Position numbers and translations under genes: made by a program
The notes under the pieces: generated by a model
Seen by the model: only the letters and a program-made list of their open reading frames with translations
Database searches by the model: none
Told to the model about the DNA's origin: nothing
Shown here: piece after piece, positions 4,027-62,588 of the stretch
Layout of the letters: each line of letters starts with the position of its first letter
Position numbering within the stretch: position 1 is the stretch's first letter
Virus record (IMG/VR): IMGVR_UViG_3300044641_009805
Location: 62,001 to 126,000 of that record
Reading direction: 5' to 3' (one strand)
DNA: 64,000 nt

Positions 4027-4251
4027 ATGCAAACGATGACGTCATGCTGGGTGATTCGCACCAAAAATGGTGTTCGAGGTGGACAAGAATTCGTCTACTG
4101 GAACCTTAATGAGGGTTGGGTCTACGATCCAATGTTAGCGACTCGTTATGCAGACGAAGCGGAGGCCTGCGGGTCGATTGCAAACTATGCTGCGAACGGG
4201 TTGTTTCCAGAAAATGGTGTGTCCGCTGTGCAAATCTTCACGACGTCGTGA
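4027..4251 (+). CDS. Hypothetical protein
   Basis: ATG 1 nt after upstream stop; 3' end contains promoter copy 4229. Confidence 0.6.
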   Translation: MQTMTSCWVIRTKNGVRGGQEFVYWNLNEGWVYDPMLATRYADEAEACGSIANYAANGLFPENGVSAVQIFTTS

Positions 4252-4263
4252 TACAGTACGAAT

Positions 4264-4485
4264 GGGTCCATAAATGTGGTTGCGATGGTGACATCGATTC
4301 TGGTTCGAATCCAGATGGATCCCCTGGGATACAGGTCGTGGTAACTTGTAATCCTGACCAAACAATCGTTATGATTGTGGTCATTAGCGGCATGAAGGGC
4401 TGCCACGACAGGAAGCTGCCGATTAAGTAGGTGAACGGAGGACCTTCTTCCTCCATAGTAACTAACCCCGGGTTTCGGAGGAAAC
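4264..4485 (+). ncRNA. Candidate structured RNA: 5' tRNA-like module (4264-4323) plus multi-hairpin domain
   Basis: Starts exactly 6 nt after TACAGT box; acceptor GGGTCCA/TGGATCC, T-arm TCTGG-TTCGAAT-CCAGA, no D-stem, GNRA-capped CGATG/CATCG hairpin, then four more hairpins. Confidence 0.7.
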
Positions 4486-4486
4486 A

Positions 4487-4831
4487 GTGTACAACGATTC
4501 GATTTTCAAGCTAAAGTTGCAGATCGAATTTCTGAATAAGGGTGTCGTACCCCTTGCGTGGAGGCAAGAAAGTGGAGCTCCGACCCACTTCGACATCAAC
4601 AAGATCCTTGCCGAGTTCCCCCCGGACGAGGCCCGCGCGATGAAGCGCAAGTTCCGCAAGCTCTGGAGGAAGCTGGTTGAGCACAGCCTGAAGCGTCCAG
4701 GAAAAAACTCCAGGCGCCGGCTTCATAACATCGAACATGGCGAGGCGATCCCATCCCGCAAGGCGAAGAACTTCAGAAAGGGCGAGGTCCTCAATGCCAT
4801 TCACCGCAAAGTTGCCAAGGCACCCAAATGA
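4487..4831 (+). CDS. Basic hypothetical protein
   Basis: GGAGG SD at 4477-4481, GTG start; MKRKFRKLWRK. Confidence 0.75.
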   Translation: MYNDSIFKLKLQIEFLNKGVVPLAWRQESGAPTHFDINKILAEFPPDEARAMKRKFRKLWRKLVEHSLKRPGKNSRRRLHNIEHGEAIPSRKAKNFRKGEVLNAIHRKVAKAPK

Positions 4832-5351: not shown

Positions 5352-5738
5352 ATGAAGCGATCTGACACCGAGATGTTGCTGATGGCCGCCGGTGCAGGCC
5401 TGCGTAAGTCCGACCTACGGGCATTCAGACTTGGTGCAGTAGGCATCCGGAACGATGGTATCCTCGTATCGGCATCCAATGGTCCTGCCCCTTTCCCCCA
5501 TCCTGATGCCCATGCTGAGGCTCGGCTGACGATGAAGCTGACTCCCGGGTCTGAGATCTGGGTGGCACGTGTTCGGAAGGATGGAACCCTTGGTATCGCC
5601 CGGCCTTGTCCCCGGTGCATGGTGCGTATCCGGGCCGCCGGGGTATCTCGAGTGGCCTACACGATTTCAGATATAGAACATGGAGTGATCCATTTGCACT
5701 CCGGTGGTGAAGTAATGAAGCCGATGAGAGGGCGATGA
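5352..5738 (+). CDS. Zn-dependent cytidine/dCMP deaminase-fold protein
   Basis: HAE ... PCPRC deaminase motif. Confidence 0.85.
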   Translation: MKRSDTEMLLMAAGAGLRKSDLRAFRLGAVGIRNDGILVSASNGPAPFPHPDAHAEARLTMKLTPGSEIWVARVRKDGTLGIARPCPRCMVRIRAAGVSRVAYTISDIEHGVIHLHSGGEVMKPMRGR

Positions 5739-61763: not shown

Positions 61764-62588
61764 ATGAGTGAAGTAAACAAAGTTAATGAAGATATCGTAG
61801 CGTTAAAAATCGCTTTATTAGAATCTAAGGTTCTAAAAGAGATATCTGAGAAGCAGCAAGAAGAATTGGAAAATTTTGTTGAAAAATCACAAAAAGCAGT
61901 AGAGTTGTTTTTAGACGCAATTACTAGCGAGAACATAAGTTCTACTGCTATTAAGGGATTTTTAGAAAAAGCAGAAGAAAAACAACGAGAATATCTAGAA
62001 AAGATTCAATCTGGTTCTTTAAAACCTAAAGACGAACAAAAAGCAATAGAGAACATAAAAAAAATAAATGGAGCTTTTGCAGGATTTGCCGTGGCAATGA
62101 AAAATATTCCAAAAGCAGGAATAGCAATAAAAGACTTCAAGAAAATATTAAAAAAAGAATTAGAAGACAGTAGAAATGATAATAGAACTTCTAAAAAAAT
62201 GTCAGAGCTATTTCCAAATGATTATCAGAAATTTTCAGCAGCCTTAAGTTCTTCTTTTAAAACTAAGATTAGCGTTTATGATCCTGTAAAATTGGGAATT
62301 CCTTGGGATACAAATGCTGTAGTTTCTGAATTCGTGAACATGCCTGTAAAAGCTTTAAATAGATTTACTGGTAAAGTTCAAGACAGCGAACCGCCTCCAA
62401 CTCCTCCTGCACCGACACCACCAGGGTCTCCACCGACACCTGCCGCACCTGATGTGAAAATTAAAGATATTTTCAAAGGTGCAAATGAACAAGACATTAG
62501 AAAGTTTAATGAAAAGTTTAAAGAAAAATTTGGATTTGAACTTTCTGATAAAGATGACCTAGCTGCAATACTTGCTAGTATGACATAA
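61764..62588 (+). CDS. Hypothetical protein with Pro-rich linker
   Basis: LKIALLES N-terminus; ATAATTTAT directly upstream. Confidence 0.7.
   Translation: MSEVNKVNEDIVALKIALLESKVLKEISEKQQEELENFVEKSQKAVELFLDAITSENISSTAIKGFLEKAEEKQREYLEKIQSGSLKPKDEQKAIENIKKINGAFAGFAVAMKNIPKAGIAIKDFKKILKKELEDSRNDNRTSKKMSELFPNDYQKFSAALSSSFKTKISVYDPVKLGIPWDTNAVVSEFVNMPVKALNRFTGKVQDSEPPPTPPAPTPPGSPPTPAAPDVKIKDIFKGANEQDIRKFNEKFKEKFGFELSDKDDLAAILASMT

Follow-up and report, generated by a model that had tools for sequence, protein, structure and literature searches.

We analyzed a 64,000-nucleotide stretch (the window) of the uncultured phage record IMGVR_UViG_3300044641_009805, covering positions 62,001 to 126,000 of a record of 278 kb. 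Near the start of the window a short orphan ORF is followed by a reduced tRNA, a series of hairpins and the gene of a small basic protein, and the coordinates of these features are collected in Table 1. A sequence-only reading had proposed that the hairpins form a structured RNA with a loop-loop contact, and all of the elements it described are present in the sequence. The upstream ORF gave no Pfam or PHROG hit, is conserved in three relatives (loci L005 to L007), and is weakly similar (E=0.004 in a single comparison) to an 85-aa ORF which lies next to a second copy of the RNA in the same genome.

Table 1. Features of the RNA locus and its flanks (window coordinates).
Feature	Position	Strand	Description
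Upstream ORF	4027-4251	+	74 aa, orphan; ends 12 nt before the tRNA-like element
tRNA-like minihelix	4264-4323	+	Acceptor stem 4264-4271 with 4315-4322, including a G3:U70-type wobble; one short hairpin at 4283-4296 (5 bp, 4-nt loop); T arm 4300-4314 with loop TTCGAAT; discriminator at 4323; inferred processing handle derived from tRNA-Lys
RNA element	4326-4470	+	About 145 nt
Hairpin A	4327-4354	+	10 bp with one bulged A at 4350; apical loop CGTGGTA at 4337-4343
Hairpin B	4355-4383	+	TGACC/GGTCA plus ACAATC/GATTGT
Hairpin C	4388-4421	+	Base stem 4388-4392 with 4417-4421; purine-rich asymmetric internal loop (TGAAGGG // GAAGC); apical stem CTG/CAG, 4400-4402 with 4409-4411; loop CCACGA at 4403-4408
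Loop-loop (kissing) pairing	4337-4407	+	CGTGG 4337-4341 with CCACG 4403-4407; extendable to 7 bp, 4335-4341 with 4403-4409
Invariant 3' module	4430-4463	+	GGT (4430-4432) pairs with ACT (4461-4463); GAA at 4433-4435; hairpin D at 4437-4454, flanked by GAAC and AGTA; AGTA at 4457-4460; inferred protein-binding site
Proposed alternative pairing	4448-4454 with 4477-4483	+	TTCCTCC with GGAGGAA
Pyrimidine tail and SD	4466-4483	+	CCCC (4466-4469) can pair with part of the SD GGAGGA (4477-4482)
Basic protein gene	4487-4831	+	114 aa, start codon GTG at 4487; motif PPDEARAMKRKFRKLWRK (residues 45-62); invariant R54, F56, R57, W60 and R97; inferred RNA-binding partner

Thermodynamics alone does not lift the structure above chance, since the MFE z-score was only -1.4 for 4326-4489 and -1.6 for 4245-4500, and the MFE fold replaces hairpins A and C with one long helix. 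Comparative evidence does. In an alignment of 10 distinct sequences the proposed helices plus the kissing pairs were 87% paired, against 31-48% when partners were slid by 1-3 columns, 29 of 54 pairs changed on both sides, against 3-8 in the slid controls, and no shuffle of 500 reached the observed covariation score. The kissing helix was 96% paired with 4 of 5 pairs compensatory (nominal duplex energy -14.9 kcal/mol), in hairpin A 9 of 10 pairs changed on both sides, and hairpin B showed compensatory changes of A-U to G-C. Hairpin B varies in length between clades, being 5 bp with a tetraloop in loci L017 and L019 and absent in the minimal forms, while the GGAAG-type 3' strand of hairpin C recurs in many clades. 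Different complementary loop pairs were found in more than 10 clades, among them CCACGG/CCGUGG, CUGCA/UGCAG, GUGCAG/CUGCAC, CACGGC/GCCGUG, CGCAC/GUGCG, GUCGCG/CGCGAC and CGUGCAC/GUGCACG. An automatic search for any two hairpins with complementary loops was too permissive, as shuffled sequences scored as well, but with hairpin C anchored next to the 3' module a run of at least 5 bp occurred in 61% of loci against 29% for cross-locus pairings. A pattern scan of viral contigs with the kissing sequences gave only the three close relatives plus two chance hits in coding DNA. A closing helix (CCUGGG 4323-4328 with CCCGGG 4467-4472) conflicts with hairpin A in the window clade and was not adopted there; a comparable 5'/3' helix, GUCC(G) with (C)GGAC, appears in distant clades by inspection only.

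The constant core of the RNA is its 3' module, composed of GGU-GAA, a variable hairpin and AGUA-AC. GUGAA and AGUAAC were invariant in 29 seed sequences, and in 42 distinct matches the G-C and U-A pairs of the closing helix were invariant while its third pair and stem D covaried. At the level of sequence and secondary structure this is the signature of a bulged-G (sarcin-ricin / loop E) motif, with AGUA opposite GAA between two helices. The order is GAA, then a hairpin, then AGUA, which appears to be opposite to the 23S SRL and the eukaryal 5S loop E and to resemble the S-turn of the T-box specifier loop. In the minimal forms, a single hairpin of about 25-35 nt with an internal loop, the module is the only RNA element present.

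The RNA matched no family of Rfam 15 (4227 models, including riboswitches, ribozymes, r-protein leaders, T-box, YrlA, tmRNA, GOLLD and ROOL), neither on 4326-4489 at gathering thresholds or at E<=10 nor in 20 diverse homologous loci at E<=5. No nucleotide match, and no protein match by tblastn of three members of the protein family, was found in 50,697 deposited phage records, T4-like phages included, and thus no cultured host system. A scan of prokaryote genomes gave one hit, on a Bdellovibrionota MAG contig. Literature searches found no description, although it cannot be excluded that the motif is listed unnamed in the supplements of the 2023 catalogue of viral structured RNAs.

The 3' module is linked to the gene of the basic protein. 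A covariance model of the module found it in 58 of 100 protein loci, always on the gene strand, upstream of the gene in 13 and downstream in 45, and a strict pattern search found it in 62 of 112 loci on the gene strand and in 0 on the other. It should be noted that 42 of the 100 loci gave no module hit at E<=0.05, some of these having divergent or AU-rich modules or short flanks. The protein family has 546 cluster representatives at E<=0.001, all stand-alone proteins of about 100-180 aa, with an invariant R.FR..W core. The AlphaFold model is all-helical (pLDDT 77), with the basic helix spanning residues 46-69. No Pfam, PHROG or PDB match was found, and structure searches with Foldseek (PDB and AFDB clusters) and VIA-align, as well as a search of a protein atlas, gave no match and no recognised RNA-binding fold. 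The protein shares a 20-residue R..KR.FR.LW motif with ribosomal protein bL20 at the same residue numbers, but homology was not supported: PF00453 found nothing in the genome or among 15 family members, hhalign probability was 7-9% over 20-21 residues only, and a deeper profile no longer found L20 in the PDB.

The same phage carries a second copy of the RNA. The covariance model gave exactly two hits in the record, window 4425-4466 and genome 53304-53346 on the minus strand, which are 13 kb apart and on opposite strands. The second copy lies in the tRNA cluster, away from the protein gene and directly 3' of a true tRNA-Lys(UUU), and keeps its own kissing pair, CGACG/CGUCG. The same two-copy layout occurs in two related genomes (G002 and G003), a weaker second copy (E=0.004) lies behind a tRNA-Val in a distant genome, and two complete genomes (G004 and G005) have only one copy. 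A full tRNA-Lys also precedes the RNA in L017 and L019. The element that the sequence-only reading called a tRNA mimic, 3 nt upstream of the window copy, is a reduced tRNA: it was called neither by ARAGORN nor by the Rfam tRNA model (RF00005), and only the acceptor and T arms plus a short hairpin remain, yet its acceptor and T stems covary and are 99-100% paired. It is not supported as a tmRNA, since ARAGORN found none, the G3:U70 wobble is not kept in all relatives (GU in 7, GC in 2 and AU in 1) and no conserved tag frame exists.

These results support the inference of the sequence-only reading that the locus holds an undescribed structured ncRNA or translational switch, possibly working with the downstream K/R-rich protein, with two refinements. 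The switch it proposed, in which the 3' arm of stem D pairs alternatively with the SD, is not conserved and is not supported beyond the nearest relatives, as both partners change without compensation in the homologous loci L013, L017 and L019. What recurs in the upstream-type loci is a short distance from the module to the start codon, 21-28 nt in 16 of the 21 loci listed, the outliers being L142 and five of the six E-module-only loci. In many of them there is also a weak pyrimidine-tail/SD hairpin (-5.4 kcal/mol for the local fold here, -1 to -6 kcal/mol overall); similar CCYC-loop-GAGG hairpins occur in L142, L013, L066, L074, L077, L088, L067 and L089 but not in the MFE of L017, L019, L023 or L025, and this evidence is weak. 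In addition, the RNA is not only a 5' leader, given its downstream position in most clades and the second copy in the tRNA cluster.

The reading which we consider somewhat more likely than not is that of a tRNA-linked RNA and its cognate RNA-binding protein. The RNA would be made as part of a tRNA-type transcript, with tRNA-processing enzymes defining its 5' end. The neighbouring protein is inferred, from co-occurrence, to be its partner, with the invariant R-K-F-R-K-x-W-R helix most likely binding the 3' module, so that the two would form a ribonucleoprotein, although there is no evidence of binding. Direct evidence for transcription or processing is lacking: contigs from RNA libraries cover 4182-4425 and 4334-4484 only at depth 3-4, and DNA carry-over cannot be excluded. 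The inference of regulation is weaker. In this phage and most other upstream-type loci, bound protein would also block its own translation, as ribosomal proteins do on their leaders, and the second copy would supply the free RNA. However, in 45 of 58 loci the RNA is downstream of the gene, where it cannot act as a translational operator of that gene, so that autoregulation can hold only for some clades, and the single copy in G004 and G005 means that a scheme of free copy plus operator copy is not general.

Other explanations appear less likely. That no RNA element exists, the hairpins being chance features of a spacer or lying inside a coding frame (ORF 4116-4430 or a minus-strand ORF), could be suggested by the unremarkable single-sequence stability and by the ORFs of 70-104 aa which overlap the region on both strands. 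This is refuted by the covariation, by G-U pairs that fit the + strand only, by the strand specificity of the module next to the gene and by the interrupted frames: in 8 of the 9 sequences checked all three + frames carry stops inside the element (in L142 one frame has none), and loop indels of +1 and -1 occur. The conserved 4248-4430 reading frame that would have argued against the sequence-only reading was thus not found. A protein-independent riboswitch or self-cleaving ribozyme, with the basic protein merely the regulated gene, would agree with the compact fold, its pseudoknot-like tertiary contact and invariant single-stranded purines, and with the 13 of 58 hits in the 5' leader. It is very doubtful in view of the 45 downstream positions, the copy unlinked to the gene, minimal forms too small for a ligand pocket and the absence of a match to any known riboswitch or ribozyme model. 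A type III toxin-antitoxin system is not supported either, as there are only two distant copies rather than a tandem repeat array and the protein matches no known family.

Processive antitermination of the lambda N/nut or HK022 put kind, in which the RNA would act in cis on the polymerase with the basic protein as the N-like factor, is also unlikely. A small protein with an arginine-rich helix is encoded next to its RNA site on the same transcript, in an early-type region of small genes, the site lies upstream or downstream as with nutL and nutR, and in distant clades the RNA sits between the protein gene and a conserved downstream gene block. On the other hand, the RNA core is an internal-loop module, often joined by kissing hairpins, and far more elaborate than boxB, typically a 15-nt hairpin with boxA beside it. 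The arginine-rich helix is internal and not N-terminal, there are one or two copies per genome, one of them behind a tRNA, and no terminator-like signals above chance lie beyond the RNA (promoter scans were not above chance either), although no boxA-like element was looked for. A trans-acting RNA aimed at host translation, tRNA metabolism or a host defence, with the protein only its chaperone or stabiliser, is an improbable but not a mutually exclusive alternative. It would fit the free-standing copy behind tRNA-Lys(UUU) in three related phages, the tRNA-shaped handle retained in several clades, the motif shared with bL20, which is of an rRNA-contacting type, and the often palindromic kissing sequences (GUGCAC, UCGCGA), which would also allow intermolecular pairing. 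Against it, no target is identified, there is no similarity to any rRNA leader, Y RNA or tmRNA model, and bL20 homology is not supported. Also improbable in our view is a new kind of phage ribonucleoprotein whose RNA is produced from tRNA operons by tRNA punctuation, whose protein is kept in step by feedback on the leader copy, and which acts in trans on the host's translation or tRNA machinery or against a tRNA-targeting defence, the clade-specific kissing loops either locking the fold or letting the RNA oligomerise.

Among known systems, autogenous operators of ribosomal proteins (such as bL20 on the rpmI-rplT leader, and S15, L1 and S8 on their mRNAs) are similar in that a small basic protein is encoded beside a structured RNA shortly ahead of its own SD, with a second site in a stable-RNA operon. 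Here the RNA matches no leader family, L20_leader included, is downstream of the gene in most clades, and its free form is a small phage RNA and not rRNA. Small stable RNAs of phage tRNA clusters, such as T4 RNA C and D, and tRNA-like handles such as mascRNA on MALAT1 probably offer a parallel for an inferred release by RNase P and 3'-end tRNA processing, but here the RNA has a dedicated, inferred partner protein family. GOLLD and ROOL RNAs (PMC12286853) are likewise phage-borne, often adjacent to tRNA genes, found in lake metagenomes and built with loop-loop contacts. They are 580-800 nt, RNA-only and in Rfam, while the present RNA is about 30-150 nt, has an inferred protein partner and matches neither model. 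Short covarying loop-loop pairings of 5-7 bp, with a small helical protein in the neighbourhood, also recall phi29 pRNA and ColE1 RNA I/RNA II with Rop. In our case both loops are in one RNA, about 60 nt apart, and minimal members lack the loops but keep the protein, so that the kissing complex is not the protein's primary site.

The result defines a new RNA family and a new protein family that travel together in hundreds of uncultured large phages from lakes, soils and seas, with no match in Rfam, Pfam or PHROGs or in the deposited phage records searched. It adds a compact RNA with an inferred protein partner to the short list of structured RNAs tied to phage tRNA clusters, where the other known tRNA-adjacent phage RNAs are huge and form RNA-only cages. 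While its significance is potential rather than shown, the function of the pair being still unknown, it could reveal a new way in which large phages handle RNA or translation, and it also shows how a tRNA gene can decay into a bare, inferred processing handle while its passenger RNA stays under selection.

The window is part of a 278-kb IMG/VR virus record, and the same DNA is present in many lake and river metagenomes. It should be noted that the G+C content falls from about 0.60 (6-14 kb) to about 0.30 (50-64 kb) within positions 1-64000, which reflects either a strongly mosaic genome or a chimeric assembly. Between a 74-aa ORF and a 114-aa basic ORF lies a gap of 235 nt, which is unusually long for this densely packed region, and this gap holds a tRNA-shaped element followed by a series of hairpins. 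All of the coordinates proposed for these hairpins by the sequence-only reading check out, as do the complementarity of loops A and C and a 7-nt complement between the 3' arm of hairpin D and the SD. Folding of the single sequence does not make the structure significant: the z-scores were -1.4 and -1.6, and the MFE fold merges hairpins A and C into one long helix. The hairpin model scores -41.5 kcal/mol without the loop-loop duplex (nominally -14.9), as compared to -53.8 kcal/mol for the MFE.

Coordinates of the RNA elements and of the associated features
Feature	Position	Strand	Remarks
74-aa ORF	window 4027-4251		
tRNA-shaped element	window 4264-4323		60-nt remnant
Hairpin A	window 4327-4354	+	loop at 4337-4343
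Hairpin B	window 4355-4383	+	
Hairpin C	window 4388-4421	+	loop at 4403-4408
Hairpin D	window 4437-4454	+	set between GAAC and AGTA
114-aa basic ORF	window 4487-4831		
Cytidine/dCMP deaminase-family ORF	window 5352-5738		Pfam PF00383, E=3.7e-6; 0.5 kb downstream of the basic-protein gene
Second RNA copy	genome 53300-53430 (L143 about 1805-1930)	-	outside the window, about 8.6 kb upstream of window position 1; model hit at genome 53304-53346
Small ORF flanking the second RNA copy	L143 1478-1735	-	
Two "tRNA-???" genes in the tRNA cluster of G006	L165 969-1117		2-nt anticodons (ARAGORN)
Conserved gene pair preceding the basic-protein gene in distant clades	L020, L021, L029-L060, about 1-1200 in each locus		

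The conservation of the structure was addressed by collecting the contigs that carry homologs of the downstream protein, which range from 96% down to 37% identity. The gap is conserved in these contigs, and its substitutions keep the base pairs. Pairs were counted on an alignment of 10 distinct sequences for a structure composed of the acceptor, T, A, B, C-base, C-apical, module-base and D helices, with the kissing pairs written as a pseudoknot. In this alignment 87% of cells are paired, against 31-48% when the partners are slid by 1-3 columns; 29 of 54 pairs change on both sides, against 3-8 in the slid controls; and 0 of 500 shuffles reached the observed covariation score. The kissing helix itself has 4 of 5 pairs compensatory and is 96% paired. 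Other clades carry different, mutually complementary loop pairs, among them CCACGG/CCGUGG, CUGCA/UGCAG, GUGCAG/CUGCAC, CACGGC/GCCGUG, CGCAC/GUGCG, GUCGCG/CGCGAC and CGUGCAC/GUGCACG. The G-U pairs place the RNA on the + strand. In 8 of the 9 sequences checked all three + frames carry stop codons inside the element (in the ninth, locus L142, one frame has none), and the loops carry +1 and -1 indels; a conserved reading frame as the alternative explanation is therefore excluded. One metagenomic contig joins window position 4327 to 4429, and skips or replaces hairpins A to C while keeping the tRNA-like element and the 3' module; this may be a natural short variant or a diverged relative.

One part of the RNA never changes, i.e., GGU-GAA, a variable hairpin, and then AGUA-AC(Y). 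A strict pattern search for this module found it beside the protein gene, on the gene strand, in 62 of 112 loci and in none on the opposite strand. A covariance model of the module (R1) found it in 58 of 100 loci at E<=0.05, all of them on the gene strand, with 13 upstream and 45 downstream of the gene. Stem D and the third base pair of the closing helix covary. Some marine relatives keep nothing but this module, which sits there 16-33 nt before the start codon of the protein, while other clades add hairpin C with its purine-rich internal loop, then hairpins A and B and the kissing contact, and then a tRNA or tRNA-like handle. In distant clades the basic-protein gene is preceded by a conserved pair of genes, one encoding an AAA_5 (MoxR-like) ATPase of about 370 aa and the other a protein of about 185-245 aa with weak M78/DUF6782 metallopeptidase hits, and a conserved unknown protein of about 140 aa follows the RNA. 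The deaminase-family ORF downstream of the basic-protein gene in the window is also seen as a neighbor in the homologous loci L013 and L014.

The protein family is large, with 546 representatives at 50% identity, all of which are stand-alone proteins of about 100-180 aa. Residues R54, F56, R57, W60 and R97 are invariant. The AlphaFold model (pLDDT 77) is all-helical and matches no known fold, and searches of Pfam, PHROG, the PDB and a protein atlas gave no match. The only lead was a 20-residue resemblance to the R..KR.FR.LW segment of ribosomal protein bL20, at the same residue numbers. Profile-profile comparison gives only 7-9% probability, however, and the Pfam L20 model finds nothing; we regard this resemblance as a shared basic-aromatic helix and not as homology.

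In two of the homologous loci, L017 and L019, the element upstream of the RNA is a full tRNA-Lys(UUU) with an encoded CCA. The remnant in the window keeps the acceptor and T arms, which covary and are 99-100% paired, while one short hairpin replaces the D and anticodon arms. Scanning of the whole 278-kb record with R1 gave exactly two hits, the window copy and a second copy which lies directly 3' of a genuine tRNA-Lys(UUU) inside the 12-tRNA cluster. This second copy has its own hairpin A and C-type loop, with the kissing pair CGACG/CGUCG, and its 3' tail carries an unpaired CCUCC (anti-SD-like) followed by an A-run; it is not next to a homolog of the basic protein. The small ORFs flanking the two RNA copies are weakly similar to each other (27% identity over 51 aa, E=0.004 in a single comparison); the RNA and this ORF may have been duplicated together. 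Two close relatives, G002 and G003, have the same two copies, and a distant phage, G006, has a weaker second copy (E=0.004) behind a tRNA-Val in its tRNA cluster. By contrast, two complete jumbo genomes, G004 and G005, have a single copy next to the protein gene.

Nothing in Rfam 15 matches the RNA, and nothing matches among 50,697 deposited phage genomes at either the DNA or the protein level. A search of 185,579 prokaryote genomes gave one hit for the protein family (35% identity), on an 89-kb contig of a Bdellovibrionota MAG which may be a prophage or a mis-binned phage contig; the same MAG has an ordinary bL20 gene elsewhere. No description was found in the papers searched, although these did not include the supplements of a 2023 catalogue of about 10,000 unnamed viral RNA candidates.

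Taken together, these data show a new and widespread family of structured RNAs that neighbors one protein family, is frequently attached to tRNAs, and is present in two copies in this phage. We infer, without direct evidence of binding or transcription (RNA-library contigs reach only a depth of 3-4), that the protein binds the invariant module and that the RNA is released by tRNA processing. What such a particle would do remains open; the other readings are antitermination, action on host translation or tRNA metabolism, a decoy against a defence system, and oligomerisation through the loops. The specific switch proposed by the sequence-only reading, in which the 3' arm of stem D pairs with the SD, is not conserved. 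The hairpin between the pyrimidine tail and the SD is weak, and in most clades the RNA lies downstream of the gene, where that gene cannot be regulated at initiation. Where the module does lie 21-28 nt before the start codon, as in 16 of the 21 loci listed, we further infer that bound protein would repress its own translation and that the copy in the tRNA cluster would act as the free RNA, which is the logic of ribosomal-protein operons.
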